From: Isurus oxyrinchus
Lineage: Eukaryota
NCBI GenBank assembly: GCA_026770705.1
Contig: JANJGN010000021.1
Span: forward strand, 99,324,001-99,388,000
DNA: 64,000 nt
Direction of reading: 5' to 3'
Shown: piece by piece, positions 12,494 through 61,837 of the stretch
Numbering within the stretch: position 1 is the first letter of the stretch
Layout of the letters: each line of letters starts with the position of its first letter
The notes under the pieces: model-generated
What the model saw: only the letters and a program-made list of their open reading frames with translations
The model's database searches: none
Told to the model about the DNA's origin: nothing
Made by a program: the position numbers and the translations under genes

Positions 12494-15400
12494 CATAAGA
12501 CCATAAGACATAGGAGCAGAAATTAGGCCATTCGGCCCATCAAGTCTGCTCCGCCATTCAATCATGGCTGATAAGTTTCTCAACCCCATTCTCCCGCCTT
12601 CTCCCTGTAACCTTTTATCCCCTTACCAATCAAGAACATATCTATCTCAGTCTTAAATACACTCAATGACCTGGCCTCCACAGCCTTCTGTGGCAATGAA
12701 TTCCATAGATTTACAACTCTCTGGTTAAAGAAGTTTCTCCTCATCTCTGTTCTAAAAGGTCTTCCCTTTACTCTGAGGCTGTGCCCTCGGGTCCTAGTCT
12801 CTCCTACTAATGGAAACATCTTCCCCACATCCACTCTATCCAGGCCTTTCAGTATTCTGTAAGTTTCAATCAGATCCCCCCTCATCCTTCTAAACTCCAT
12901 CGAGCATAGACCCAGAGTCCTCAAACATTCCTCGTATGTTAAGCCTTTCATTCCTGGAATCATTCTCGTGAACCTCCTCTGGACCCTCTCCAGGGCCAGA
13001 ACATCCTTCCTGAGATACGGGGCCCAAAATTGCTCACAATATTCTAAATGTGGTCTGACCAGAGCCTTACAAAGCCTCAGCAGCACATCCCTGCTTTTAT
13101 ATTCTAGTCCTCTTGAAATAAATGCCAACATTGCATTTGCCTTCCTAACTACTGACTCAACCTGCAAGTTAACATTAAGAGAATCCTGGACTAGGACTCC
13201 CAAGTCCCTTTGCACTCCAGATTTCTAAATTCTCTCCCCATTTAGAAAATAGCCTATGCCTCTATTCTTCCTACCAAAGTGCATGACGTCACACTTCCCC
13301 ACGTTGTATTCCATCTGCCACTTCTTTGCCCATTCTCCTAACCTGTCCAAATCCTTCTGCAGCCTCCCCGCCTCCTCAATACTACCTGTCCCTCCACCTA
13401 TCTTTGTATCATCTGCAAACTTAGCCAGGATGCCCTCAGTTCCTTCATCTAGATCATTTAATGTATAAAGTGAAAAGTTGTGGTCCCAACACTGACCCCT
13501 GCGGAACTCCACTAGTCACTGGCCGCCATCCTGAGAAAGACACCCTTATCTTCACTCTCTGCCTCCTGCCAGACAGCCAATCTTCTATCCATGCTAGTAT
13601 CTTGCCTCTAACACCATGGGCTCTTATCTTACTGAGCAGCCTCCTGTGCAGCACCTTGTCAAATGCCTTCTGGAAGTCCAAGTAGATAACATCCATTGGC
13701 TCTCCTTTGTCTAACCTACTCGTTACCTCCTCAAAGAATTCTAACAGATTTGTTATGCATGACCTCCCCTTGATGAAACCATGCTGACTTTGCCCTATTT
13801 TACCATGCACTTCCAAGTATTCTGAAATCTCATCCTTAATAATGGACTCTAAAATCTTACCAACAACCGAGGTCAGGCTAATCGGATGTAATTTCCCGTC
13901 TTTTGCCTCATTACCTTCTTTAACAGGGGGGTTACATTAGCGATTTTCCAGTCCTCTGGGACCCTCCCTGACTCCAGTGATTCCTGAAAGATCACCACTA
14001 ACACCTCCAATATCTCTTCAGCTATCTCCTTCAGAACTCTGGGGTGTAATCCATCTGGTCCAGGTGATTTATCCACCTTCAGGCCTTTCAGTTTTCCTAG
14101 CACCTTCTCATTGGTAATGGCCACCATACTCACCTCTGCCCCCCGACTCGCTTGAATTTTGGGGATGTAACTCGTGTCTTCCACCTTGAAGACTGATGCA
14201 AAGTACCTATTCCGTTCCTCCGCCATTTCTTTGTTCCCTACGACTACTTCTCCAGCATCATTTTTCAGCAGCCCAATGTCCAGTTTTGCCTCTCTCTTAC
14301 CCTTTATATATCTAAAAATACTCTTGCAACCTTCTTTTATATTACTGGCTCGGTCATCCTCATATTTAATCTTCTCCCTCCTTATTTCTTTTTTAGTTGT
14401 CCTCTGTTGGTCTTTGTAGGTTTCCCAATCCCCTGGTTTCCCATTGCTCTTCGCCGCATTGTATGCTTTCTCTTTAGCTTTTATGCTGTCCCTGACTTCC
14501 CTTGTCAGCCATGGTTGCCTCGTCCTCCCTTTAGTATGCTTCTTCTTCCTAGGGATGAATTTTTGCTGTGTCTCCCAAATTACTCCCAGAAACTCCTGCC
14601 ATTGCTGTTCCACTGTCTTTCCTGCTATGTTCATCTCCCAGTCAATTCTGGCCAGCTCCTCCCTCATGCCTCTGTAGTTGCCTTTATTCAACTCTAATAC
14701 CGTTACATCTGATTCCAGCTTTTTCCTCTCAAATTGCAGGGTAAATTCTATCATATTATTGTCACTTCCTCCTAAGGGTTCCTTCACCTTAAGCTCCCTT
14801 ATCAAATCTGCCTCATTACACATCACTATGTCTAGAATTGCCTGTTCCCTAGTGGGCTCCACCACAAGCTGCTCCAAAAAGCCATCTCGTAGACAATCTA
14901 CAAATTCCTTTTTTTGGGATCCACTATCAACCTGATTTTCCCAGTCTACCTGCATATTGAAATCCCCCATGATCACTGTAACCTTGCCTTTCTTACACGC
15001 CCTTTCTATCTCCTGGTGTATCTTGTGCCCCACATCCTGACTACTGTTCGGAGGCCTGTACATAACTCCCATTATGGTTTTTTTCATCTTTGAAGATCCT
15101 CTACCTACACAGATTCTACATCATCTGACCCTACGTCATTTCTTGCTATCAATTTAATTTCATTTCTTACTAACAAAGCAACCCCACCCCCTCTGCCAAC
15201 CTGCCTATCTTTTCGATAGGATGTATATCCTTGGATATTTAGCTCCCAGTCCTGATCCCCCTGCAGCCATGTCTCCACGATGCCCACCACATCATACCTG
15301 CCAATTTCAATCTGCGCCACAAGCTCATTTACCTTATTTCGTATACTGCGTGCATTCAGATACAACAGCTTCAGTCCTGTATTTCCCGTCCCCTTTCTCA

Positions 15401-16930
15401 TTGCTGTCCCTTTATCTGATGTGCTTGAAGTTAGATTCCTAGCCCTTTCCAAACACTTTGTCCTACTTTGTGTTCTGGAGACTTTAATAGCCTCTCCTGG
15501 GCTCTCCTTCCTTTTCAGTTTTTTCATAATTTTCCATGAAGTTGAATCCAGCCCCCTAAACGCTAACCTGCTGCTTTGTTTCCCATTAGTCATACTTCTT
15601 GACGTTTTACCCTTCCTTCCCCCCCACTTTCTAGTTTAAAGTCCTGTTTACCACCCTATTTACCCTTTTCGCTAGAACATTGGTCCCAGATCGGTTCAGG
15701 TGGAGAAAGTCTGAATGGTACCGATCCCTCCTGTTCCAACACTGATGCCAGTGCCCACGAAATGGAACCCCTCTTTCCTGCACCACTCCTTCAGCCATGT
15801 GCTTACTTCCCTTATTCTCGCGTCCCTATGCCAATTTGCACGTGGCTCGGGTAGTAATCCGGAGATTATAACCCTTGAGGACCTGTTCTTTAATTTAGTT
15901 GCTAGTTCCTGATAATCCCCAAACAGGCCCTCTTTCCTAGTCTTACCTATGTTATTTGGCCCGACGTGGATCACAACAACTAGATTCTACCACTCACTCT
16001 CCAAAATCCTTTTAAGACATGTTCCTCACCCTGGCACCAGGCAGGCAACAAACCATGTGGGACTCTCGATCCTGCTTACAAAGGATGCTATCAATTCCCC
16101 TAATCATAGAATCCCCTACCACTACCACTTGTCTTTTTGCTCCCTCTTCTTGAATGGCCTCCTGTGCCACGATGCCATTGTCAGCTGGCTCATCCTCCCT
16201 ACAGCCCTGTTCCTCATCCACACAGGGAGCAAGTACCTCGTACCTGTTGGACAAGGTCAAGAGCTGAGGCTCCTCTGTTCCTGAACACAGGATCCCTCTA
16301 CCTGCCTCACTTGCAGTCACAGCCTGCTAACCCTGACCACTGACCGAACTTGAGGTACTTAATCTACCGGATGTGACCACCTCCTAAAACAAAGCATCCA
16401 GGTAATTCTCCCCCTCCCAGATGTGCCACAGCGTCTGGAGCTTGGACTCCAGCTCATCAATTCTGAGCCGGGGTTCCTTCAGCAACCAACACTTACTGCA
16501 GATGTGGTCATTGCGGCTCACAATGGGATCTGCTAGCTCCCACATCATACAGCTACAGCGCATCATCTCCCCAGCCATCTCGACTTACTTAATTAATTTA
16601 TTAATTAGCTTTCAGTGTTTTGTTTTTCAAATTTGGTGCAGATTTCCTACCAACCAATCAGGTCACAGCTTTCCTGTGATGTCACTTTTTCAGTTTTGGC
16701 TTCAGTTACTCTGTGCCACAAGGTCACCGCTCCGGTGCTCCTCCCTTCAAGTCTGCTCCCTGGAGACAAGGCCACGAATCCCCGAGGTAAGCTAGATTTA
16801 TACTCACTGCTCCGGTGCTCCTCCCTCCGAGTCTGCTCCCTGGAGACATGGCTGCGAATCCCCGAGGTAAGCTAGATTTATACTCACTGCTCCAGTGCTC
16901 TTCCCACTGAGTCAGCTCCTAGAATTTACT
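12494..16930 (-). mobile_element. Near full-length CR1 LINE: ORF1 esterase (SGNH-type) plus ORF2 APE endonuclease/RT, frameshifted
   Basis: ORF1 pieces: VVVVGDSMIRGID, HVGPNNIGK, VIISGLLP. ORF2 pieces: LYLNARSIRNK, YRPPN, GDFN, KSPGPDG, QHGF, YLDFQKAFDKV, PQGSVLGP, KFADDTK. 3' tail (cataagac)n at 12494. 5' UTR carries tandem repeats. Confidence 0.95.
16729..16912. repeat. 80-bp tandem monomers in the CR1 5' UTR (~2.3 copies)
   Basis: gctcc(g/a)gtgctc recurs at 16729, 16809 and 16889. Confidence 0.85.
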
Positions 16931-17689: not shown

Positions 17690-18562
17690 AAAAGGTTGAA
17701 TGTCTTGGGCTACAGGAATGGGATGGTCAAATGGGCAGATAAGTGGCAGATGGAATTTAACCCTGAAAAGTGTGAGGTGATACACTTTGGAAGAAGTAAT
17801 TTGACAAGGAAGTATTCAATGAACGGCTTGGCACGAGGAAGTTCTGAGGAACAAAGGGGCCTTGGCGTGTGTGTCCATAGATCTCTGAAGGCAGAGGGGC
17901 ATGTTAGTGGTGGGTGAAAAAGGCATATGGGACACTTGCCTTTATCATTTGAGGCATAGATTACAAAAGTAGGGAGGTCATGTTGGAGTTGTATAGAACC
18001 TTGGTGAGGCCACAGCTGGAGTACTGTGTGCAGTTCTGGTCGCCACATTATAGGAAGGATGTGATTGCACTGGAGGGGGTGCAGAGGAGATTCACCAGGA
18101 TGTTGCCTGGGATGAAACCTTTAAGTTATGAAGCGAGGTTGGATAGACTTGGGTTGTTTTTGTTGCAGCAGAGAAGACTGAGGGGTAACCTGATCGAGGT
18201 GTACAAATTATGAGGGGTATGGACAGGGTGGATAGGGAGCAGCTGTTCCCCTTAGTTGAGGGGTCAGTCACAAAGGGACATAAGTTCAAGGTGAGGGGCA
18301 GGAGGTTTAGGGGGGATGTGAGGTGAAACTTTTTTACCCAGAGGGTGGTGACGGTCTGGAATGCACTGCCTGGGAGAGTGGTGGAGGCGGGTTGCCTCAT
18401 ATCCTTTAAAAAGTACCTGGATGAGCATTTGGCACGTCATAACATTCAAGGCTATGGGCCAAGTGCTGGTAAATAGGATTAGGTAGGTAGGTCAGGTGTT
18501 TCTCACGTGTCAGTGCAGACTCGATGGGCCGAAGGGCCTCTTCCGCACTGTGATTCTGTGAC
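17690..18562 (+). mobile_element. CR1 LINE 3' fragment
   Basis: WADKWQMEFNPEKCEVIHFG and LYRTLVRPQLEYCVQFWSPHY; ends in the tail gcactgtgattctgtgac. Confidence 0.9.
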
Positions 18563-18993
18563 TTTTTTTTACCTGTTTGTTGTATTGCAGGAAAAATTGC
18601 AACAATTTTAAAAACTTGTATGGAGAAAACCAGGAGGATTTAAAGCAAAGATCTACTCTGGCCCACCAACTGGGAAACATCTCCATTTCAAACTACTCAA
18701 ACAGGAGGACATCGGCACAGTATCCAGTCTGAAACTAGAGGAGCGATACTGGGTCTTCCCTGTACCTGTGCAGAGTGAAGAGCAGCAGGCAGGCGGGCAG
18801 TAGAGGCAGTTCACAGGTGAGGCTGGTGAGCAGCCCGACAAGCTTGTTTGCCTTTCACAATCAGCAATGAGACAGCGATGTGGCCGGTCCGACTACGAGA
18901 TTGTGTGAGGAGTCTGCACAAGATCGAGCGTTTTAAGTTTTGGATGAAGCCCCAGTTTTAATATTGTGCCTCCCATGACACCAGGGCAGCTAT

Positions 18994-19647
18994 ATGGGGG
19001 AGAAGCCGTTCAAATGCGAGTTGTGTGGCAAGGGTTTTGCACAGGCCTACACCCTCCAGGTCCACGAGCGTGCCCACCGGGGGGACAAACCCTTCAAGTG
19101 TGAGCTCTGCGGCAAGGCGTTCGTGACCTCTGTGGGCCTCTTGGAGCATCACCGCACCCACACGGGTGAGAGGCCGTTCCACTGCGATGTTTGTAACAAG
19201 ACCTTCGTGAAGTCCTCCCGTCTCCGCGAGCACCAGCGCACCCACACCGGGGAGAAGCCCTTCAAGTGTGAGGTATGCGAGCAGGCCTTCACGCAGCTGG
19301 CATTCCTGGTCAGTCACCGGCGGGTTCACACGGGCGAGAAGCCCTTCAAATGCCAGGTGTGTGACAAGGCCTTCACTCAGTCGTCGACGCTTCTGCAACA
19401 CCGGCGGATCCACACGGGCGAGAAGCCCTTCAAGTGCGGGGTCTGTGACAAAGCCTTCTCCCGGTCGCTGTGCCTCGTGGAGCACCAGCGCATCCACACC
19501 GGAGAGAAACCCTTCAAATGCGAGGTCTGCGACAAGGGCTTTGCAAAGTCAACACAGCTCCTGATCCACCAGCGCATCCACACGGGGGAGAAGCCATTCA
19601 GATGCAACACTTGCGACAAAGCCTTCACCCAGTTGATATTCCTCCAG
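18994..19647 (+). CDS. C2H2 zinc-finger protein, coding part 1 (218 aa; fingers 1-7 and the first part of finger 8)
   Basis: Tandem CxxC-x12-HxxxH units with TGEKPF linkers, open for 218 codons to …[10 protein letters not shown]|gtaagc (phase 0 donor at 19648). An upstream acceptor (tttgttgtattgcag|) ends at 18590, so the true start may depend on exons outside what I can identify. Confidence 0.9.
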
Positions 19648-22578
19648 GTAAGCTTGGTGGGCGATGCTGAGCTACAGGCACAGATAGCCCCTGGCTCAAA
19701 GAGCAGGGTTGGGTAAGAAACATTCCTGGATATGCAGTGTTCAGAAAAAATAGAGAAGGAAAAAAAGGCGGGGGGGGATGTGGTATTCATTATGGAGAAT
19801 GTTGGAGAGGCAGGAGGACTTAGCAGCAATTACCAAACCTTTTTGACTCTTGCTAAGAGACAGTAGAGGCACTGTACATTGCTGGGTGTATTCTATATGT
19901 CATCAACTAGTGGGGGAGATATGGAGGAACAAATTTGCAAGGGAAGTTAGAGAAGTACAAAAACTATATAGTAGTTATAATGGGGGACTTTAATCATCCT
20001 AATAGACTGGAATAATAATTGTGTAAAGGTGTAAAGGAATAGTAATTGTGTAAAGGATAGAGAGGGTCAAGGGTTCCTGAAGAGCATTCAGGAGAATTTT
20101 CCACATAAGTATGTTTTTGCATAAACAGGGTAAGAGGCATTGCTGGGTCAGGTTCTGGGGAATGAGATGGTCAAGTGAATTTGGTATTAGCTATAGCCAT
20201 GGCCTAGTGATAATGTCACTGGACTAATAATCCAGAGGTCCAGACTAATGCTTTGACGCCATGGGTTCAAATACCCACCACAACAGCTGATAGCATTTAA
20301 AGTCGATTAATCAAATCTGGAATAGAAACTAGCCTAATCCTGATCATGAAACCTTGTCATAAAAACCCACCTGGTTCACTGATGCCCTTTAGGGAAGGAA
20401 ATCTGCCTTCTTTACCTGGTCTGGCCTTCTTGTGATTCCAGGCCCACAGCAATGCTAAAAATAAAAACAAAAAAACTGCAGATGCTGGAAATCCAAAACA
20501 AAAACAGAATTACCTGGAAAAACTCAGCAGGTCTGGCAGCATCGGCGGAGAAGAAAAGAGTTGACGTTTCGAGTCCTCATGACCCTTCGACAACAATGCG
20601 ATTGACTCTTAACTGCCCTCTGAAATGGCCTAACAAACCACTAAGTTCAAGAGCAATTAGAGATGGGCAACAAATGCTGGCCTTGCCAGCAATGTCCATA
20701 TCTCATGAAAGAATAAATTTTAAAAAGTAGGTTCAGGTTGGCTTTGAAAAAGAAGAAGGTGCAATCAGGAGTAAAATAACTAATCGGAGGTGGGCCAACT
20801 TTAATGGGTTGAGAATGGATCTGGTCCAGGTAAATTGGAATCAAAGATTGACAGGCAAAACTGTACTGAACAAATACAGGGCTATCTTTAAAGAAGACAT
20901 AGGTTGGGTAGAGTCAAGGCATATTGAGACAATGGGGAGTGCTAGGACAATAAAAGACAATCAAAAAGTGTGTGCATGACAGGCGACAGGTTCGGACCCA
21001 GAAAGATATGGAAGGTTCAGCCGGGAAAGTGAAAAAAGAAAGAAGAGCAGTATAGAGAGAGTATGAGAAGAGACTGGCAGCTAACATAAAAGAGAATCCA
21101 AAAGTCTTCTATGGGCATAAACAGTAGTAAAATAAGGAGACAATTAGGAATTAAAAAGGCAATTTACACATGGAGGCAGATCAGGTAGTGTATGAGCACT
21201 TTATCTTTGTCTTTACCAAAGAAGGTGCTGCCAAAATCACCGTGTACAAGGAAGAATTTAGACACTGGATGAGCTATAAACCGACAAAGAGGAGGAATTC
21301 GAAAGGCTGGCCGTGCTTAAATCTAATAGGGGCACTAGGACCGGATCAGATGCATCCAAGATTACAGAGAGAAGCAAGGGTGGAAATCACGGAGGTACTG
21401 GCCATAATTTTCCAATCCTCCTTAGCTACGGGGGTGGTGCCAGAGGACTGGAGGATTGCAAATGTTACAAATGATAAAAGGCCTACATAAAACAGGTTTC
21501 TCAGCAAAGTTTTAAGTACATGAAATAAAAAGGAAATGGAAGCATGGATATGAGGTTGGCTGAGTGACAGATAACAGAGAACTGTAATGAATGGTTGTTT
21601 TGTCGGACTGGAGGATGGTATGTATTGGGTTTCCCCAGGGGTTGGTATTAGGACCACTGACATTCTTGATCTATATTAATGACCTAGAATTGGGTATGTG
21701 GGGCACAATTTCAAAATTTACAGATGGCACAAAACTTGGAAATACTGTGAACTGAGGAGGATAGTGTTAGACTTCAAGAGGACATAGACAAGCCAGTAGA
21801 ATGGGTGGACATGGTGGCAGGTGAAGTTTAATTCAGCGATGTGTGAAGTGATGCGTTTTGATTGGAAGAATGAAGAAAGACAATTTTTTTTTAAAAAGGC
21901 ACAATTTTAAATGGGGTAGAGGAGCAGAGGGACCTGGGGGTACACGAGCACAAATCATTGAAGGCGGCAGGGATCCTGAGCTTTATAAAGAGAGGCTTAG
22001 AGTACAAAAACACTTGCTCAGCCTCAACTGGAGTATTGTGTCCAGTTCTGGGCATCACACTTTAGGAAGGATGTGAAGACATTGGAGAGGGTGCGGAAAG
22101 GTTTACAAGAATTATTCCAGGGATGAGAGACGTCAGTTCCATCAATAGATTGGTGAAGCTGGAACTGCTCTCTTGGGAGAAGAGAGGGTTGAGAAGAGAC
22201 TTGATATTTGAGGAGAGGTGTTCTAAATCATTAAAAACGATTTCCGCTGGTAAAGGGGTAAGAACCAGCAGACACTCATCGAAGGTGGATGGCAAAAGAA
22301 AGTGGCATAAAGATTCCATGGATTCCATCATGACATGAGGAAGTGTTTATTATGCAGTGAGTGGTTAGAGGTTGGAATGCAGGGCCTAAGCGGAGTGTGC
22401 AGACAGGCTCAATTGCGGTTTTCAAAAAGGAAATTGGATAATTATCCGAAAAGGAAAGATTTTCAGGGCCATGGGGAAAAGGCAGAGGAATGGGACTGTC
22501 GGAGTTGCTTTTTGCAGGGGCCAGCATGGGCATGATGGGCCAAACTTCTATGTTATAACCACGATTCTGTGATTCCAG
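19648..22578 (+). mobile_element. 5'-truncated, decayed CR1 LINE (with nested SINE/Penelope pieces) forming the whole putative GT-AG intron of the zinc-finger gene
   Basis: CR1 endonuclease-like sequence starts right at the junction (aagcttggt…gagctacaggcacagatagcc = KLG.ELQAQIA; NIPGY.VFRK.REGKKGG). Further in: GDFN, GPDQMHPRL…FQSSLATGVVPEDWRIANV, KF.DGTK. It ends in the CR1 tail gattctgtgattc directly before CAG|. TSD TCCAGGTA at 19643-19650 and 22574-22581. Confidence 0.9.
20200..20725 (+). mobile_element. SINE nested in the intronic CR1, itself interrupted by a Penelope terminal fragment (~20454-20592)
   Basis: gtcactggactaataatccagagg…gggttcaaa…ggaaggaaatctgcc…tacctggtctggcct, with related copies at 43070-43410 and 61350-61680. 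The nested piece matches the end of the palindrome element (aattacctggaaaaactcagcaggtctggcagcatc) and is flanked by a CAATGC duplication. Confidence 0.7.
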
Positions 22579-23106
22579 GTACATCAGCGCACTCACACCG
22601 GGGAGAAGCCCTTCAAGTGTGACATCTGTGACAAAGCTTTCACCCAGTCATCGAATCTTCAGGTACACCAGCGGACCCACACAGGGGAGAGGCCATTCAA
22701 GTGCGAGGTGTGTAAGAAAGCTTTCACACAGTCGTCAAACCTGCGGGTGCACCAGCGTATCCACACAGGGGAGAAGCTGTTCAGGTGTGAGGTTTGTGGC
22801 AAAGCCTTCACTCAGCTGATATTCCTCCAGGTCCATCGGCACACCCACACTGGGGAGAAACCCTTCAAGTGTGACATCTGTGACAAAGCCTACACACAGC
22901 TGCCCAACCTCCGGGCACATCAACGCACTCACACAGGCGAGAGGCCATTCAGGTGCGAGCTTTGCAACAAGGCGTTTATCCGCTCGTCCTCCCTGCTGGT
23001 GCATCAGCGCACGCACACGGGGGAGAGGCCATTCAAGTGTGAGCTTTGCGACAAAGCCTTTACTCAGTCATCTTCGCTGCTGGTACATCAGCGCACACAC
23101 AAATGA
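22579..23106 (+). CDS. C2H2 zinc-finger protein, coding part 2 (175 aa; end of finger 8 and fingers 9-14)
   Basis: ctgtgattccag|GTA CAT CAG CGC ACT CAC = VHQRTH completes finger 8 in phase 0. It is in frame with ORF 22708..23106. The joined product is 393 aa with 14 fingers. Confidence 0.9.
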
Positions 23107-25559
23107 GAAAGAGCCAGAGTGTGAGATTCTCAGCCGGGCCTGCTGGTCACCTCTGCAGCCTCCGGAAAGACCAGCACATCTTCATAGATCCGGCAGGCAT
23201 AATCCAGAGGGCTGCCCAAGCTGCCTGTGCAACCCCCAACCCTCTCCCCCACGCTCCATACACAGTGCGACGCCTCAAATCTCAGCAAGTGTCTCTTCCC
23301 TCTCCCGCCAATGGTACTTCCACAGGAGTGAGAAACTCTGGAAGTACAACACGTTCGAGAGGGTTATGAACAGCGTGAGTTCCCCAACATCAGTCGCCCT
23401 AGTGCAGCCGTAAAGGGAATGAGTTATTCCAGACCTAAAGTCCTTCCTGGAGGAGCAGCGTGCCCATGCAGGCTGAGAACCCTTCCAGTAGAGCCTCTGA
23501 ACAAGTGATTCACACACGCACTAGAAACTGAGCAAATCTGCCCAATGTCGGAAAGGCTTTGCCTGCTGATCCACCAACACATGCATATGGGGTTGATCCA
23601 TTCCAGAGGCGTTAGTTCGAGGTACTGCAGTAGTATTTTTAAAAATACTCTGGGTAAGGTTTGGGGGGTGGGGAAATCAGCCAGAGAAAGGGAAAGAGAC
23701 CTGTAGGAGAAATGCCCCATAGGAAGTGAACTGCGTGCAGTGGCTAGTGGGAAACTGTTCCAATGATCCCAGTGACCTTTTGTTCCTCCTATCTTCCCCA
23801 TTGCCAGTCAGGCTTGACAGACTGTGGCTGCCTTTCAGTGCGGATGAACAATTACCGGCAGATTGAACTGCACAGGGACTCCAACAGGATGTGACACATC
23901 CTCACCATGGCATCAAACCTTGAAGGCAGCAGTGACTGCAATGCAAGAGTCTCACATTTGGCACAAAGTAGCTTTTCATGGTAGTGATTTTATATTAACG
24001 GGGATAAAGACTCTCTAAGGACATTCTGTAATGGCTGACGCAGTGGGCTTGGGTTATTTCAGTTTTGTCTTCCAGCACTGCCTCCTGTTTTTTGCCCCTC
24101 TCCCTGCAAATCAGCCCCTGTGGCTCTGGTGGTGTTCCAGTGAGCCCGCCTGGTGATGCACTGTTGCAATTTTCTGGAGGCATCCTGCAGGAATTTTAAG
24201 TGAATGGAAAAGGGTGCCCTGTGGGGAAGGAGCTGTTCCATTATTGTGTTTGGGTTTTATTACCCCCGCCCCTTCCCCCCCCACAACTTGCCCAGTCTGC
24301 AGGAGCGTGAGCAGGGGCTGTGGGGGAGGGGTGGGGGGCACTCCCTGCCTCAGAGCCCAAGTGAACTGTCTTTTCTGCTGCTCCCGTGGTTTGGCTCTTG
24401 AAGGATCCCAGTGATTGTGAGTGCCCACTGTGTGGGAATTTTAATTATCTCTGCTTCTCCATTACCTCCACTAGTGCAGATGTTTAAATGCCTGCAGCAG
24501 ACCCGCTGTAAATGGGGACTGTTTAAAACTGAAAACTTCCAACCGAGGGAGCTGAAGTGGCATCGTGCCATAGCTCCATCACACTGTGCCCAAGAAGTGT
24601 TGTAATAGAGGTTCAGAGCAGCAATGCCCTCCCCAGTACATGGATGTGGGGAGTTTCCAGATCTCAGCCCAGCTGCAGAGTGGGGGGCCAGAAGAACGAC
24701 CATGGACAAGATCCAGGGAGGGAGGCAAGGCCAGAGGACTCTGCTGTCATAGATTGAGGCCCTGTGTGCAGGACACCTACCTAGAAGAGGATGTGGAAAG
24801 ATTTTAATTATGACTGATTGTGAAGGCTTGGCGTAGGCAGTGCAGAGTAAATATTTGGAGTGCGGACTCGGTGTCAACAATGCGTGAACATAGCGGCTGA
24901 AACATGATGTCTGCTTTCACGGGTGGTAGAGCCTATAGACCTGTCTCCGTTAGGGCTGTATCATTTCAGACAAACACTACAGGCGGTGTCTGGAGTTGCC
25001 ATTGAGAAGCGGCCACACATTCCCTATGGTGGCTGACCCATCATTGAATATTCTCCTTGGGAAGCAATTGATACTCATGACATAAACAAAAACAAAATTA
25101 CCTGGAAAAACTCAGCAGGTCTGACAGCATCTGCGGAGAGGAACACAGTTAACGTTTCGTATGACTCTTCATCAGAACTGGGGGAATTTAGAAATGAGGT
25201 GAAATATAAGCTGGTAAGGGGGGCGGTGGGACAGGTAAAGCTGGATAGAGGGCCAGTGATGACATACTTTGTGCTTTGATCAGTGAGAAAGATGTTCCCT
25301 TTCCTTTATAGCCAAATATCAGAGAAAATTGGAGCTTGGGTCTTGAGTGTTTATATTTCAGTGTAGTGATATGGAAGCGGTACTCCATGCAACTGTGGAC
25401 CCCATTTTTATATTTACTCAAAAGGCAGTTAAAGGACACTTCAGAAGGACTCAAAAGCACTGTAAAGTGCTTTCTTGGTTTCAAAGTAGTTTAAGATATT
25501 TGTGTTCGTGAAACACCATGTTGTTGTGAAACACCACTTTGTGTAAATTTACAACCATT

Positions 25560-33030: not shown

Positions 33031-34504
33031 CAACCGCATTTTCCTGCACTATCCCTGTCATCCCTGATGTTTTTAATAGGTAGAAATCTACTGATCTCTG
33101 TCTTAAACATATTCAATGACTGAGACTCCACAGCCCTCTGGGGCAGAGAATTCCAAAGATTCATTACTCTCGGAATAAACAAATGCCTCCTCATCCCAGT
33201 CTGAAATGGCCTATCCCTTACTCTGAGACTATGTCCCCTGGTCTAGAACCTCCCCAGCCAGGGGAAACATCCTTTCCACATCTACCCGATCGATGTTGAA
33301 CCAAATATCGGCGACAGAATTGAATGCTGCCCACAGGTTAAATATCCATAATCACATGTGAAGATGCAGCTATCTTAACAGAGCTTGTGGCCATTTTAGT
33401 ATGATTTTACAATCCATAATATCAAAGACCCTCATGCTTGTACTGAGCGTGACATGGCACCCATAAAGGAAAAAAATGGAATATAATGTTATTTTTACGT
33501 GATTATCCCGTGAAGCGAGGCAAAACACATACATTGATTCTGCATATCTCTTAACATGTCAACAATTTTTGTTGAAATGGGCTGGTTTTCCTCATTGGAA
33601 AAACACAGGGCTGTTTCCCACCGGTCTCTCATCTGGGTTTCTCTTTTTAAAAGTTGGGGAGCATGTTCCCTTCCATATTCCCCTATGCTTTCCAGCCTGC
33701 CTCAGTTCATCTATCTCTCTTCTATCTTGCCCTTGTCTGTGAGAGTTCCCAGACCCTGGTTTACTTTGAGTGGGGGGGCCTATGTGTTAAGTCAGAGTCA
33801 CGAACAAGAGCTGCAGATTTCCTGGCTGTTGAAACCCTCTGCTCCTCCACATGAGACTTGAGGCTGGGAAAGAGGCAGTTTTTAAACTCCTCAAAAAATA
33901 TTATTTCTCTTAATCCATCAGAAATACAGTCAGTTTTCTAGGGCTCAGACCCTCTGTTCGAAGCTAATTGTTTAATTCTCCCCAATTCTAAATAAGTTTG
34001 AGCAAGCTTGTTCCTGAGAGATTCAGAATTGTTGTCGGTACACTTCTGGGATGAGTTCATAGGCCCTTAGGATAGCAGCTTTTGCCTGTTCATAATTTTC
34101 ACAGCTATCAGCGGGCAACAGAGAGTAAACCTCTCATGTTTTTCCATTTAAGTGATCTTGCAGTGGAGGAGTCCAGACTTCTTCTGGCCTCTTTAATCTA
34201 AGCTTCAAAAAATTAAAACCTGTCTCTGAACTAGGATCAGTCAAATCACCAGTGGCTTCTTCATTACATAAAGATGACCTTGCCCTCCCAATTCAATTTC
34301 TTTAAGCCTTTTTCTCATTGGGCCTGAATTTCCTCCTCTAGGTTTTCCAGCTGGAAAATGTTTTCTCACTCTTTCTCTTTTTTCTCTCTCTCTCTCTCTC
34401 CCTTGTTCTCTCTCTCCTATCTCTCCCTTATCTAGAGATTTTCAACTATGATGGTTCAGCTGTTTCAGATGATTCCTGGTGCTTCAAATGTGTCTAACAC
34501 AAGA

Positions 34505-36704
34505 CAAAAACAGAATTACCTGGAAAAACTCAGCAGGTCTGGCAGCATCGGCGGAGAAGAAAAGAGTTGACGTTTCGAGTCCTCATGACCCTTCGACAGA
34601 ACTTGATTTCGAGTCCAAGAGTTGAAATATAAGCTGGTTTAAGGTGTGTGTGTGGGGCGGAGAGATAGGGAGAGAGAGAGGTGGTTGTGTAGACAAACAA
34701 GCAGTGATAGAAGCAGATCATCAAAAGATGTCAGTGGCAATGGTACAAAAGAACACATAGGTGTTAAAGTTAAAGTTGGTGATATTATCTAAACGAATGT
34801 GCTAATTAAGAATGGATGGTAGGGCACTCAAGGTACAGCTCTAGTGGGGGTGGGGGAGCATAAAAGATTTTAAAATATTTAAAAATAATGGAAATAGGTG
34901 GGAAAAGAAAAATCTATATAATTTATAGGGAAAAAAAAGGGAAAAAGGGGGAAACAGAGAGGGGGTGGGGATGGGGGAGGGAGCTCACGACCTAAAGTTG
35001 TTGAACTCAATATTCAGACCGGAAGGCTGTAAGGTGCCTAGTCGGAAGATGAGGTGTTGTTCCTCCAGTTTGCGTTGGGCTTCACTGGAACAATGCAGCA
35101 AGCCAAGGACAGACATGTGGGCAAGAGAGCAGGGTGGAGTGTTAAAATGGCAAGCGACAGGGAGGTTTGGATCATTCTTGCGGACAGACCGCAGGTGTTC
35201 TGCAAAGCGGTCGCCCAGTTTACGTTTGGTCTCTCCAATGTAGAGGAGACCACATTGGGAGCAACGAATGCAGTGGACTAAGTTGGGGGAAATGCAAGTG
35301 AAATGCTGCTTCACTTGAAAGGAATGTTTGGGCCCTTGGACGGTGAGGAGAGAGGAAGTGAAGGGGCAGGTGTTACATCTTTTGCGTGGGCATGGGGTGG
35401 TGCCATAGGAGGGGGTTGAGGAGTAGGGGGTGATGGAGGAGTGGACCAGGGTGTCCCGGAGGGAGCGATCCCTACGGAATGCCGATAAGGGGGGTGAAGG
35501 GAAGATGTGTTTGGTGGTGGCATCATGCTGGAGTTGGCGGAAATGGCGGAGGATGATCCTTTGAATGCGGAGGCTGGTGGGGTGATCACCCCACCAGCCT
35601 CCGCATTCAAAGGATCATCCTCCGCCATTTCCGCCAACTCCAGCATGATGCCACCACCAAACACATCTTCCCTTCACCCCCCTTATCGGCATTCCGTAGG
35701 GATCGCTCCCTCCGGGACACCCTGGTCCACTCCTCCATCACCTCCTACTCCTCAACCCCCTCCTATGGCACCACCCCATGCCCACGCAAAAGATGTAACA
35801 CCTGCCCCTTCACTTCCTCTCTCCTCACCGTCCAAGGGCCCAAACATTCCTTTCAAGTGAAGCAGCATTTCACTTGCATTTCCCCCAACTTAGTCCACTG
35901 CATTCGTTGCTCCCAATGTGGTCTCCTCTACATTGGAGAGACCAAACGTAAACTGGGCGACCGCTTTGCAGAACACCTGCGGTCTGTCCGCAAGAATGAT
36001 CCAAACCTCCCTGTCGCTTGCCATTTTAACACTCCACCCTGCTCTCTTGCCCACATGTCTGTCCTTGGCTTGCTGCATTGTTCCAGTGAAGCCCAACGCA
36101 AACTGGAGGAACAACACCTCATCTTCCGACTAGGCACCTTACAGCCTTCCGGTCTGAATATTGAGTTCAACAACTTTAGGTCGTGAGCTCCCTCCCCCAT
36201 CCCCACCCCCTTTCTGTTTCCCCCTTTTTCCCTTTTTTTTCCCTATAAATTATATAGATTTTTCTTTTCCCACCTATTTCCATTATTTTTAAATATTTTA
36301 AAACCTTTTATGCTCCCCCCACCCCCACTAGAGCTGTACCTTGAGTGCCCTACCATCCATTCTTAATTAGCACATTCGTTTAGATAATATCACCAACTTT
36401 AACTTTAACACCTATGTGTTCTTTTGTACCATTGTCACTGACATCTTTTGATGATCTGCTTCTATCACTGCTTGTTTGTCTACACAACCACCTCTCTCTC
36501 TCCCGATCTCTCCGCCCCACACACACACCTTAAACCAGCTTATATTTCAACTCTTGGACTCGAAATCAAGTTCTGTCGAAGGGTCATGAGGACTCGAAAC
36601 GTCAACTCTTTTCTTCTCCGCCGATGCTGCCAGACCTGCTGAGTTTTTCCAGGTAATTCTGATTCTGTTTTTGTTTTGGATTTCCAGCATCCGCAGTTTT
36701 GTTT
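34505..36704. mobile_element. Penelope-like (GIY-YIG) retroelement insertion arranged as a spacerless inverted repeat centred at 35585/35586
   Basis: Mirror-image ORFs 34985..35314(-) and 35857..36186(+) encode NLVHCIRCSQCGLLYIGETKRKLGDRFAEH (GIY-YIG). Centre reads ggtggggtga|tcaccccacc. Flanking direct repeat TGTCTAACAC(A/G)AGA at 34491-34504 and 36705-36718. Confidence 0.92.
36572..36606 (+). ncRNA. Minimal hammerhead-ribozyme-like motif in the Penelope terminal region
   Basis: CUGUCGA-A-GGGUC-AUGAG-GACUC-GAAAC-GUC resembles the CUGANGA / stem II / GAAA core, with one non-canonical core base. A mirror copy is at ~34566-34600, and a copy with canonical CUGAUGA is on the minus strand at ~25151-25178. 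Confidence 0.45.
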
Positions 36705-37989: not shown

Positions 37990-40900
37990 AAAGAACAAAC
38001 AACTAAGAACGAACAACTAGGAACAGGGCCTTTGGCCCTCCAAGCCTGCGCCGATCATATTGCCCGTCAACTAAAACATTTTGCACTTCCGGGGTCCGTA
38101 TGCCTCTATTTCTATCCTATTCATGTATTCGTCAAGCTGCCTCTTAGACACCACTATCGTACCTGCTTTCACCACCTCCTCTGGCAACAAATTCCAGACA
38201 CTCACTACCCTCTGCGTAAAAAACTTGCCCCACACATCCCCTCTAAAGTTTTCTCCTCTCACCTTAAATCTATGTCCCCTAGTAATTGACTCTTCCACCC
38301 TGGGAAAAAGCTTCTGCCTATCTACTCTGTCCATGCCACTCATAATTTTGTAAACTTCTATCAAGTCACCCCTCAATCTCCGTCGCTCTAGTGAGAACAA
38401 ACTGAGTCTCTCCAACCTCTCCTCATAGCTAATAACCTCCAGACCAGGCAGCATCCTGGTAAACCTCCTCTGCACCCTCTCCAACGCCTCCATATCCTTC
38501 TGGTAATGTGGTGACCAGAATTGCATGCAATATTCCAAGTGTGGCCTAACCAAGATTCTATACATGCCATGTGCCTTCCTGACTACCTTATCCACCTGCG
38601 TTGCCACTTTCAGTGACCTGTGGACCTATACACCCAGATCCCTCTACCCATCAATGCACTTAAGGGTTCTGCCATTTACTGTATAATTCCTGCCTGTATT
38701 AGATCTTCCAAAATGCATTACCTCGCATTTGTCCGGATTATACTCTATCTGCCATTTCTCTGCCCAAGTCTCCAACCGATCTATATCACGTTGTATCCTT
38801 TGACAATCCTCTTCACTATCTGCAACTCCTCCAACCTTGGTGTCGTCTGCAAACTTACTAATTAGCCCAGTTATATTTTCCTCCAAATCATTTATGTATA
38901 CCACAAACAGCAAAGGTCCCAGCACTGATCCCTGTGGAACTGCACAAGTCACCCTTCTACTGCTAACATCTGTCTTCTATGGCCAAGCGAATTCTGTATC
39001 CATCCTGCCAGCTCACCTCTGATCCCGTGCAACTTTACCTTCTGTATCAGTCTGCCATGAGGGACCTTGTCAAAAGCCTTACTGAAATCCATGTATATAA
39101 CATCCACTGCCCGACCATCGTCGATCATCTTTGCCACTTACTTGAAAAACTCGATCAAGTTAGTGAGACACGACCTCCCCTTCACAAAACCACGCTGCCT
39201 CTCACTAATACACCCATTTGCTTCCAAATGGTAGTAAATCCTGTCACGAGGAATCTTCTCCAATAATTTCCCTACCACTGACGTAAGGCTCACTGGCCTG
39301 TAATTTCCTGGATTATCCCTGCCACCCTTCTTAAACAACGAAACAACATTGGTCATTCTCCAGTCCTCTGGGACCTCACCCATAGACAGTGAGGATACAA
39401 AGATTTCTGTCAAGGCCCCAGCAATCTCCTCCCTTGCCTCCCTCAGTACTCTGGGGTAGATGTCATCTGGCCCTGGGGACATATCCACCTTAATATTCAA
39501 AATGCCTAACACCTCTTTTTTGATCCCAACATGATCCAGGCTATCTACACACTCTTCCCTAGACAAATCGACCGCTAAGTCCTTCTCTTTGGTGAATACT
39601 GATGAGAAGTATTCATTTAGTTTCTCTCTCATTTCTTCTGGCTCCACACACATTCCCACGTCTGTCCCTGAGTGGGCCCATCCTTTCCCTGGCTACCCTC
39701 TTGCCCTTTACATATGTATAAAAGGCCTTGGGATTTTCCTTAATCCTGGTTGCCAGTGACTTTTCATGACCCCTTTTAGGCCTCCTGACTCCTTGCTCAA
39801 GTTTCTTCCTACTTTCTTTGTTTTCTCCATGGGCTTCATCTGTTTCCAGCCTGCTAGCCCTCACGAATGCTTCCCTTTTCTTTTTGACTAATCTCACAAT
39901 ATCCTTCGTTATCCAAGATTCCTGAAACTTGCCATGCTTATCCTTCATCCCAGCAGGAACATGCTGGTCCTGAATTCTTATCAACTGACGTTTCAAAGCA
40001 CCCAACATGTCAGTTGTTGATTTGCCCTCAAACATCCGCCTCCAGTCTAGATTCCTCAGTTCCTGCCTTATATTGTTATAATTAGCCTTCCCCCAATTAA
40101 GTACCTTAACCCGAGGACTCCTGTTATCCTTATCCACCAGTACCTTGAAACTTACTGAATTATGGTCACTTTTCCCAAAATGCTCTCCTACTGAAACTTT
40201 GACCACCTGGCCGGGTTCATTCCCTAATACCAGGTCCAGTATTGCCCCTTCCCTAGTTGGACTATCTACATATTGTCTCAGGAAGCCCTCCTGGATGCAC
40301 CTTACAAATTCTGCACCATCCAAACCCCTAGCACTAAGTGATTCCCAGTCAATATAGGGAAAGCTAAAATCATCCACCACAACAACACTATTGCTTTTAC
40401 ATCTTTCCAAAATCTACCTACATAACTGTTCCTCAATCTCCCGCCGGCAATTTGGAGGCCTATAGTAAACCCCCAACATTGTGACTGCACCCTTCCTATT
40501 CCGGAGCTCTACCCATATTGCCTCGCTGCATGAGGCCAATGAGGTGTCCTCCTGTCGTACAGCTGTGATATTCCCCTTAACCAGCAGTGCAACTCCCCCA
40601 CCTCTTCTAAATCCCTCTCTATCCTGCCTGAAACATCTCAATCCTGGAACGTTTATCTGCCAATCCTGTCCATCCTTCAACCAAGTCTCTGTAATAGCAA
40701 TAACATCATAGTCCCATGTACTAATCCAAGCTCTAAGCTCATCTGCCTTGCCTGTTATACTTCTCGCATTGAAACAAATGCATTTCAGACCCCCAGTCCC
40801 ACTGTGTTCAGTAATTTCTTCCTGCCTGCCCTTCTTCTTAGTCCTACTGGCCATATTCACTGGCTCCCAGTCATTTATTTCACCTCCTGACCTATTGCTC

Positions 40901-42400
40901 TGCTTCCCACCCCCTTGCCATACTAGCTTAAACCCTCCTGAGTGACACTAGCAAATCTCATAGCCAGGATATTGGTGCTCCTCCAGTTTAGATGCAACCC
41001 GTCCTTCTTGTACATGTCCCACATGCCCCAGAAGAGATCCCAATGATCCAGATATCGGAAACCCTCCCTCCTACACCATCTGTTCAGCCACGTGTTCAGC
41101 TCCACTATCTTTCTATTTCTAGCCTCCCTGGCACGTGACACAGGGAATAATCCTGAGATTACAACACTAGATGTCCTGTTTTTTAACTTTCTGCTTAACT
41201 CCCTGAACTCCCGCTGCAGGACCTCGTCACTCTTCCTGCCTATGTCATTAGTACCAATGTGTACCACGACCTCTGGCTGTTCTCCCTCCCCCTTCAGATG
41301 TCCCGTACCCAGTCAGAGACCTCCTGGACCCAGGCACCAGGGAGGCAACATACCATCCTGGTGTCTCTTTCATGACCACAGAAGCACCTATCTGAGCCCC
41401 TAACTATAGAGTCCCCTATGACAATTGCTCCTCTGTGCTTTGACACCACCCTCCCACCACCCCCCCCACCCCCGCTGAACAACAGAGACAGCCGTGGTGC
41501 CACTACTCTGGCTACTGCTGTTGATTTCCCCTGATAGGCTACCCCACGCCAACAGTATCCAAAATGGTATACCTGTTAGAGAGGGGGACAGCCACAGGGG
41601 ATTTCTGCACTGACTGCCTGCCCCTTCTAGCAGTCACCCATCTTTCTGTCTGTATCTTGGGTGTGACCACATCTCCAAAACTCCTGTCAATGACGCTTTC
41701 CGCCACCTGAATGCTCCTAAGTGCATCCAACTGCTGCTCCAACCGATCCACGCGGTCTGTGAGGAGCTGCAATTGGGTACACTTCCTGCAGACGGAGTTG
41801 TCCGGGACACCAATTTCCCACATCCCACAGGTGAAGCACTTCACCCCAGCAACTGCCATTTCTAGAACTATTTAATAAATTAATTTAAATCCAAAAACTG
41901 CTTATTGACTCCTTATTAACTATACTTTCCCTAGGGCTAGATTTCTACTATAAATGCTAAATTCTAAGAACAGTAATCCCCTGATTCTGGTCTAGATACC
42001 CTCTACTTATTAATTAAGTGATTAATTTATTTGGTTTAATTAGTTTAACAATGTTTTAGTTTCAAATTCAGTGTAGATTCCCTACCAGCCAATCAGGTTA
42101 CAGATTTACCAGGACGTTACTTTTAATTTTTTTAAAATATAAAAATCCCCGAGGTAAGGTTTCTATACTCACCTCTCTGGAACTAGGCCGCGAATCCCCG
42201 AAGTAAGGTTTGTATACTCACCTCTCTGGAACTAGGCCGCGAATCCCCGAGGTAAGGTTTGTATACTCACCTCTCTGGAACTAGGCCGTGATTCCCTGAG
42301 GTAAGGTTTGTATACTCACCTCTCTGGAACTAGGCCGCGAATCCCCGAGGCAAGGTTATTATACTCACCTCTCTGGAACTCCGCCCTCTGACTCTGCTCC
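37990..42400 (-). mobile_element. Near full-length CR1 LINE (second subfamily): ORF1 zinc-finger/esterase plus ORF2 EN/RT, frameshifted
   Basis: ORF1: KCFTCGMWE…CRKCTQL, IVIGDSIVRG, VHIGTNDIG, DGLHLN. ORF2: ICFNARSI, ITETWL, YYRPPN, PGNYRPVSLTS, YMDFSKAFDKV, PQGSVLGP, KFADDTK. 5' tandem repeats present. Confidence 0.95.
42144..42381. repeat. 49-bp tandem monomers in the CR1 5' UTR (~5 copies)
   Basis: aatccccgaggtaaggtttgtatactcacctctctggaactaggccgcg repeated. Confidence 0.9.
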
Positions 42401-43069: not shown

Positions 43070-43412
43070 GTGGTGGTGTAGTGGTATTGTTACTAGACAG
43101 CTAATGCTCTGGGAAGCCTGGCTCGAATCCCATCATAGCAGGTGGTGGAATTTGAATTTAATAAATATTTGGAATTAAAAGTTGAACGATAACTATGAAA
43201 CCATTGTTGATTGTTTTATAAACCCATCTGCTTCACTAATGTCCTTTAGGGCTGGAAATCTGCTGTCCTTACCTGGTCTGCCCTACATGTGACTCCAGAT
43301 GCATAGCAGTATGGTTTGACTCTTAATAATGCCCAAGGTTATTTAGAGATGGGCAATAAATGCTGGCCTTGCCAATGGTGCCCAAATCTCATGAACGAAT
43401 AAAAAAAAATCT
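43070..43412 (+). mobile_element. SINE copy
   Basis: ggtggtgtagtggtattg (A-box-like), gctcgaatccc (B-box-like), and a 3' end gatgggcaataaatgctggcc…atgaacgaataaaaaa shared with the LINE family at 49690-50300. Confidence 0.7.
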
Positions 43413-61325: not shown

Positions 61326-61837
61326 GTAATGAAATGATGTCTTTTTTTATTCGCTCATGGGATGTGGGTGTTGCTGGCTAGGTCAGCATTTATTGCCCAT
61401 CCCTAATTGCCCTTTTTCAGAGGGCATTTAAAAGTCAATCACATGGCTGTGGGTCACATGTCAACCAGCAGATTTCCTTCCCTAAAGGGACATTAGTGAA
61501 CAAGATGGGCTTTTATGATAATTGTTTCAGGGTCACCATTAGACTTTTAATTCCAGATTTTTATTGGATTCAAATTCCACCATCTGCTGTGGTGAGATTT
61601 GAATGTAGGCCCCCAGAGTATGACCCTGGATCTCTGGATTACTAGTCCAGTGACAATACCATCATGTCATTGCATCTCCATCACCCATAGCTCATGATGT
61701 TTAAACTAGATCAATGCATTTTGAAGCATTTGAATAGCAGGATTTGAAGCATGTATTTACCATGTAGAGTTGTGCACTTATATTCACAGAGCTAGAGAGG
61801 GAGCTGGGGTTCATCTCTGGGGAATTGGATTAATGGT

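Follow-up and report, generated by a model that had tools for sequence, protein, structure and literature searches.

We analysed a 64,000-nt window of the Isurus oxyrinchus genome (GenBank assembly GCA_026770705.1, contig JANJGN010000021.1, positions 99,324,001 to 99,388,000 of the forward strand), in which a gene for a tandem C2H2 zinc-finger protein is interrupted by a decayed long interspersed nuclear element (LINE) of the CR1 group that appears to have become an intron of the gene. All positions below are counted from the first nucleotide of the window. The gene lies on the + strand. Exon 1 (18994..19647, 218 codons) runs from an ATG through fingers 1–7 and into finger 8, of which it encodes 15 residues before breaking off at 19647. 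Exon 2 (22579..23106, also +) opens with VHQRTH, the remainder of finger 8, continues through fingers 9–14 and encodes 175 amino acids (aa) before a TGA stop at 23104-23106. The proposed intron between them (19648..22578, +, 2,931 nt, GT...AG, phase 0) comprises the LINE and one copy of a short target-site duplication. An earlier sequence-only reading of this stretch, made by a model, had described a C2H2 array split in the middle of finger 8 with 2,931 nt in between, and the coordinates and codon counts agree with that description, with seven complete fingers upstream of the break, six downstream and the split finger 8.

Both junctions fall between codons (phase 0), and the two exons together encode 218 + 175 = 393 aa. 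The codons for the first Cys of each finger are spaced 84 nt apart across the array, and this period is exact once 19648-22578 is removed (22618 - 2931 = 19687 = 19603 + 84). The same excision regenerates a canonical C-X2-C-X12-H-X3-H unit in finger 8. These restorations of frame and period were computed from coordinates, with each exon handled separately and not as a joined sequence. The phase and the 84-nt period thus uphold the earlier claim that excision deletes exactly the insertion plus one duplicate and restores a 393-aa, 14-finger open reading frame (ORF). Besides the split finger, the array holds 13 complete tandem C-X2-C-X12-H-X3-H units with TGEKP-type linkers, which are normal with the sole departures of RGDKPF and TGEKLF.

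For the database searches, exon 1 was represented by its 19264-19647 part only. Pfam zf-C2H2 and zf-H2C2_2 match across 19264-19647, exon 2 contains six zf-C2H2 stretches, and the two exons, searched separately, gave zf-C2H2 E-values of 1.5e-26 and 1.9e-43. Among protein representatives, the matches to exon 2 were long poly-zinc-finger proteins (34–59% identity). Searches for homologous proteins returned no near-identical protein for exon 2 (best identity 61%, among hits of at most 306 aa) or for the 3' part of exon 1 (best 66%, among hits of at most 224 aa), length ranges that leave the 393-aa model outside. We found no zinc-finger paralogue elsewhere in the window and recognised no further coding exon in it. 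A candidate small upstream exon lies at 18775-18817 (+), with an acceptor ...cctgtgcag|AGTG, a donor CACAG|gtgagg and no ATG; as a conjecture, it might be an exon of the 5' untranslated region (UTR) that is joined to an acceptor at 18989, just 5' of the ATG at 18994.

The fingers are only 55–79% identical to one another at the DNA level, which is why recent duplication does not explain the intactness of the array; a recent internal duplication of fingers was considered and rejected on these unit identities. The array appears to be old, diversified and non-homogenised. Finger 11 has TQLIFLQVH in common with finger 8, yet the two share 80–85% DNA identity. It had been put forward as an uninterrupted internal paralogue of finger 8, and it does display the uninterrupted form, but at this identity it is not a recent copy.

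The composition of the insert was established by tblastn. The ORF2 queries came from two LINEs elsewhere in the window that are better preserved (copies A and B; 12580-15593 and 38071-41267, both on the - strand) and carry long open ORF2 pieces with Pfam matches to Exo_endo_phos, Exo_endo_phos_2 and RVT_1. The 3' tails of these two reference LINEs are unlike that of the insert, and they therefore belong to younger, different CR1 subfamilies. All matches in the insert lie on the + strand and are colinear with ORF2 from 19659 to 22493, covering the endonuclease (19659-20166), the region before the reverse transcriptase (RT) (20794-21472), the RT (21494-21677) and the ORF2 C-terminal domain (21925-22493), with about 80 nt of 3' UTR after the end of ORF2. 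Nested repeats divide the LINE into a 5' section and a remainder. In the 5' section (19651..20189, +, sense and decayed), three matches to the endonuclease of both reference copies (19659-19757, 19876-19941 and 20062-20166) are accompanied by stops and frame changes. The remainder (20721..22573, +) holds the pre-RT region, an RT from which about 260 nt are deleted, the ORF2 C-terminal domain and the 3' UTR. The insert's own ORF fragments are too decayed to match Pfam above threshold, and the LINE part is without a close copy in the window, where the best matches reach 68–77% identity over short stretches only. Its CpG observed/expected ratio (o/e) is 0.10 in the 5' section (19651-20189) and 0.10–0.35 across the LINE.

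The ends of the element can be placed closely. Directly past the left junction, the frame reading DAELQAQIA resembles, by eye, ELVAQIE and ELRAWIS of the reference copies, in line with the endonuclease-like sequence previously noticed at this junction. Because these residues align, the truncation is placed inside the endonuclease: the LINE is 5'-truncated some tens of residues into that domain, within a few bases of 19651. At the right end, the insert closes in ...ACGA TTCTGTGA TTC | CAGGTA and has no poly(A) tail. The octamer TTCTGTGA (22564..22571, +) is a perfect copy of the CR1 terminal octamer (ATTCTRTG) defined by St John and Quinn, and TTC(T) is favoured beside that octamer (PMC2612034). 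The full 13-mer at this 3' end is unique in the window. Together with the colinear tblastn matches, the octamer bears out the claim that the insert is CR1-derived from end to end. A CR1 3' fragment of the same tail type as the putative intron-forming copy lies at 17980-18562 (+), about 430 nt upstream of the zinc-finger ATG, and closes in ...CTGTGATTCTGTGAC (18552-18562), followed by a T-run.

The non-LINE sequence in the insert consists of nested repeats only. The larger is a repeat resembling a short interspersed nuclear element (SINE) (20190..20720, +, limits approximate), with 76–87% identity to 61346-61661 (-) and 43211-43403 (+). A younger short repeat of about 130 nt (20458..20592, +) interrupts it in turn and is 91–99% identical to 36574-36703, 34500-34598 and 25084-25159, a range that suggests a recently active small element. 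ARAGORN and Rfam, run on the insert, gave no match for either repeat. An older intron that was later entered by a LINE was rejected, considering that no non-LINE intron sequence is present at either end and that the flanks abut codon-perfectly. The insert is a genuine sense-oriented, 5'-truncated CR1-group insertion into a formerly continuous finger-coding exon.

The insertion is flanked by two identical copies of TCCAGGTA (8 bp), at 19643..19650 on the left and 22574..22581 on the right (both +), with AG|GT at both junctions. The sequence-only reading had reported this duplication as 8 bp; its presence at both ends stands, but its true size is 6–8 bp, because the leading TC could be part of the CR1 octamer. 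By chance, an 8-mer would match at fixed element ends with a probability of about 1.5e-5, or about 4e-4 when a few bases of slack are allowed. The left copy forms, with the first LINE bases, the donor CAG|GTAAGC, to which the duplicate contributes GTA and the LINE AGC. Donor sites follow the consensus MAG|GTRAGT and are recognised by base-pairing with U1. The donor here agrees with this consensus at 8/9 positions and, on that basis, positions -3 to +5 would be able to pair with U1. Elsewhere at the finger boundaries there is no GTAAG-type donor; the only one is at 19647. The acceptor, TTCTGTGATTCCAG|GTA, is made of the CR1 terminal octamer and the right duplicate (TTCCAG|GTA, AG at 22577-22578), with the pyrimidine-rich run before it provided by TTCTGTGA and TTC. 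Apart from the acceptor itself, AG is absent from the last 54 nt of the insert, and a candidate branch-point A lies within ATAAC at 22558 (+), 21 nt upstream of the acceptor (-21). The derivation of both sites from the duplication, as previously proposed (CAG|GTAAG and CAG|GTA), was therefore confirmed.

The reading frames on either side restrict how the downstream half could be translated. An unspliced message would remain open only as far as a TAA at 19714..19716 (+), 22 codons into the LINE (ORF 18994..19716), and would yield a 240-aa protein with seven fingers; exon 2 would therefore have no protection. Exon 2 contains no Met codon, and a TGA lies in its frame at 22570..22572 (+), two codons upstream of the acceptor (TGA TTC CAG | GTA). 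For these two reasons, exon 2 is translatable in frame only via the acceptor at 22577-22578 and a phase-0 donor. This donor might in principle lie elsewhere, in which case the acceptor at 22578 would be real but exon 2 would be spliced to another upstream phase-0 exon, for instance in an isoform that skips exon 1, and the LINE would merely sit inside the intron. Such an arrangement would supply the upstream coding exon that exon 2 requires, and upstream donor-like sites do exist, such as CAG|GTGAGG at 18817. However, the nearest strong in-phase donor for exon 2 is the duplication-made site at 19647, joining there rebuilds a canonical finger, and the window offers no other recognised coding exon. 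We consider it quite unlikely that the halves are used but not joined to each other.

The LINE also provides an internal clock for the two exon halves. At least 5 of its roughly 420 convincingly aligned codons are clear in-frame stops, and the frame changes at least 8 times from one colinear match to the next. The loss of about 260 nt where the RT begins and the two nested insertions complete the picture of a heavily decayed element, as the sequence-only reading had described it. By contrast, the flanking coding sequence (1,182 nt) shows none of the marks of a pseudogene, with no stop, no frameshift and no zinc ligand lost. All 52/52 zinc ligands of the 13 complete fingers are present, and the C-X2-C and H-X3-H of the split finger are intact, in agreement with the earlier statement that both halves are open with their Cys and His residues preserved. 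This difference between a wrecked LINE and intact exon halves is seen directly in the DNA. The exons are also the sole CpG-rich stretches nearby, with CpG o/e of 0.72 in exon 1 and 0.56 in exon 2, as compared with 0.30 for the whole window.

The difference was quantified by simulating neutral substitution on the intact LINE ORFs and on both exons, with a transition bias of 2 and a fivefold rate of CpG transitions. The LINE stop density was estimated after subtraction of the four stops that are natural to the reference ORFs, and a replicate was scored as clean if it was without stops and without ligand losses. The stop density of the LINE corresponds to about 0.10 substitutions per site. At this divergence, exon 1 was clean in 0/1,500 replicates and exon 2 in 0/1,500; at 0.04 substitutions per site, the clean fraction was 0.025 for exon 1 and 0.040 for exon 2. 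In addition, about 3.9 frameshifts would be expected in the exons at the LINE rate, and 0 were seen. If the LINE lesions post-date the insertion, both halves have been under purifying selection for most of the time since then. The intactness of exon 2 points to splicing, since exon 2 is readable only through the acceptor.

Several observations weigh against a working LINE-made intron. The pyrimidine tract before the acceptor is moderate and not strong (12/18 pyrimidines at -3 to -20; it had earlier been called weak), and the sense strand of the insert carries six AATAAA/ATTAAA hexamers that could end transcripts early; both features speak against efficient use of the splice sites. The start codon at 18994 has a T at -3 and hence a weak context, and a CpG island of promoter type was not found upstream within the window. 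Of the 18 sequencing runs listed for the locus, none is recorded as RNA, and the shares of 0.20–0.39 in ten runs guessed to be RNA are not interpretable as such. Finally, the clock argument assumes that the LINE lesions arose after the insertion, and it would be void if an already decayed copy had been mobilised in trans.

The splice-site and hexamer observations would fit a simple truncation of the gene, in which read-through into the LINE stops at 19714-19716 (the 240-aa, seven-finger product of the ORF 18994..19716, which does exist) or transcripts are cut short by one of its poly(A) signals, and the six and a half fingers beyond it persist, untranslated and not yet damaged, as a relic. A relic of this kind is difficult to reconcile with the state of exon 2, which is as clean as exon 1 (no stop or frameshift, all ligands, canonical linkers), which the simulation did not leave clean in any replicate at the LINE-implied divergence and left clean at a fraction of only 0.040 at 0.04 substitutions per site, and which has a CpG o/e well over the background of 0.30. 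We regard truncation as unlikely.

The timing assumption leads to a different possibility, a dead or dying gene that was hit recently. An old, decayed CR1 copy, including its nested SINE-like repeat, would have been mobilised in trans; the lesions in the LINE would then be undatable, and the exons would be open simply because the insertion is young. CR1-type LINEs recognise their own 3' end, and any transcript bearing that end can in principle be copied, which would permit the copying of a dead element. The still perfect octamer and the identical 8-bp duplicates would also be in keeping with a young event. On the other hand, an event that copied a dead LINE together with two nested repeats, 2.9 kb in all, would be of a rare type, the nested SINE-like repeat is 13–24% diverged from its other copies, which fits decay in place, and high CpG with intact ligands is typical of a live gene. 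A recent insertion into a dying gene therefore strikes us as improbable.

An explanation outside the biology of the insertion itself would be an assembly artefact, with a LINE misplaced into the array, or gene conversion from intact paralogues that keeps the exons open. Zinc-finger families are prone to gene conversion, and at least one structure in the window is suspicious, namely a perfect palindrome of 740 nt. The palindrome (34846-36325) consists of two arms of 740 nt each, 34846-35585 and 35586-36325, which are 99% complementary and without a spacer; it also yields identical 117-aa ORFs on both strands, and may be a real foldback or a long-read assembly artefact. At the zinc-finger locus, the duplication is clean and its flanks are codon-perfect, which marks a real retrotransposition as opposed to a misjoin, and half of the locus's words are present in several independent runs. 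Conversion is opposed by the lack of a paralogue in the window and by the 55–79% identity among the fingers, as expected of an old, non-homogenised array. We consider either explanation very improbable.

A LINE-made intron is the reading we prefer. Under this proposal, a 5'-truncated CR1-group LINE would have retrotransposed in sense orientation into a 14-finger C2H2 gene with a single coding exon, at TCCAG|GTA within finger 8, and target-primed reverse transcription would have doubled 6–8 bp of the target. The left copy and the first LINE bases would thereby have created the near-consensus donor CAG|GTAAGC, and the CR1 terminal octamer and the right copy the acceptor TTCTGTGATTCCAG|GTA. The spliceosome would excise the LINE and one duplicate precisely and rejoin finger 8 in phase 0; the full 393-aa protein would still be made, allowing the insertion to persist as a new intron, which would later have decayed and gained further repeats. 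We judge it fairly probable that this is a real LINE-made intron that acts as an intron now, and give slightly better than even chances to the stricter version, in which a CR1 LINE made a fixed, constitutively spliced intron in a single step, with both splice sites derived from the duplication. The overall interpretation of the sequence-only reading is thus supported in part: the structure it described is present and the constraint on both halves can be argued quantitatively, while the functional intron, that is, the use of the splice sites in vivo, the younger age of the lesions and the fixation of the insertion, is what we infer from the sequence.

Vertebrates are usually credited with almost no recent intron gains, and the mechanisms of the few that are known are mostly unresolved (PMC12130899, PMC12124190, PMC3443670). 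At the present locus, the DNA still records the whole history, including the element, its truncation point, its tail, the duplicated target and the restored protein repeat. If the proposal is correct, this would be a clean vertebrate coding-sequence instance of an intron made by a retrotransposon in one step, as in the AGGT insertion model, and a CR1 tail (TTCTGTGA...) ahead of a CAG|G target would amount to a ready-made acceptor. It would also provide a simple screening rule for CR1-rich genomes (sharks, rays, turtles, crocodilians, birds). CR1-group elements make up 22–34% of elasmobranch genomes (PMC13343379), and there have therefore been many chances for such insertions. A correct proposal would also suggest that LINE-rich elasmobranch genomes hold more such introns, which a systematic screen could find.

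An established proposal for intron gain has a transposon land at AGGT and derive both splice sites from the duplicate (for a review, see Yenerall and Zhou 2012, PMC3443670). As in that model, the element here sits at AG|GT, the duplicate gives AG|GT on the left and AG|G on the right, and excision leaves the coding sequence unchanged; the locus shows a transposon body from end to end, the AG|GT duplication at both ends and a restored coding sequence. The review lists cases from Oryza, Drosophila, Oikopleura and Zea only, whereas here a 2.9-kb LINE entered a vertebrate gene and splicing is predicted from sequence. Introners, families of intron-generating transposons (PMC9860276, PMC12130899, PMC11282704), are similar in that a transposable element becomes an intron upon insertion, with splice signals that come from the element, the duplication or the exon. 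However, they are multi-copy families that make many introns per genome, in most cases short DNA transposons of protists, algae and fungi, with non-LTR retrotransposons accounting for about 5% of the classified families in the same literature, while the present case is a single event involving an ordinary LINE.

The closest retroelement precedents are the SINE intron of rice catalase A and the human Alu introns (Sela et al. 2007, PMC2394776), in which an exonic retroelement is likewise removed as a new intron, in the rice case within coding sequence. The four human cases lie in 3' UTRs, are alternative (retained introns) and have their splice sites inside the Alu, unlike the locus described here, which involves a LINE in coding sequence, with a precise excision predicted and both sites derived from the duplicated target. 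Coding-sequence cases are expected to be rare (PMC2394776). A vertebrate intron formed by tandem duplication (Hellsten et al. 2011, PMC3265369) also took both of its splice sites from a duplicated AGGT and kept its coding sequence. The body of that intron is duplicated exon sequence instead of a mobile element, and experiments demonstrated its function. A study of 342 intron gains in the human lineage was conducted with intronization in view, using methods not built to detect transposon-made introns (PMC12124190). Compared with these systems, the mechanism is already known and vertebrate coding-region examples are very few, and the Isurus oxyrinchus locus is a new case and not a new mechanism.

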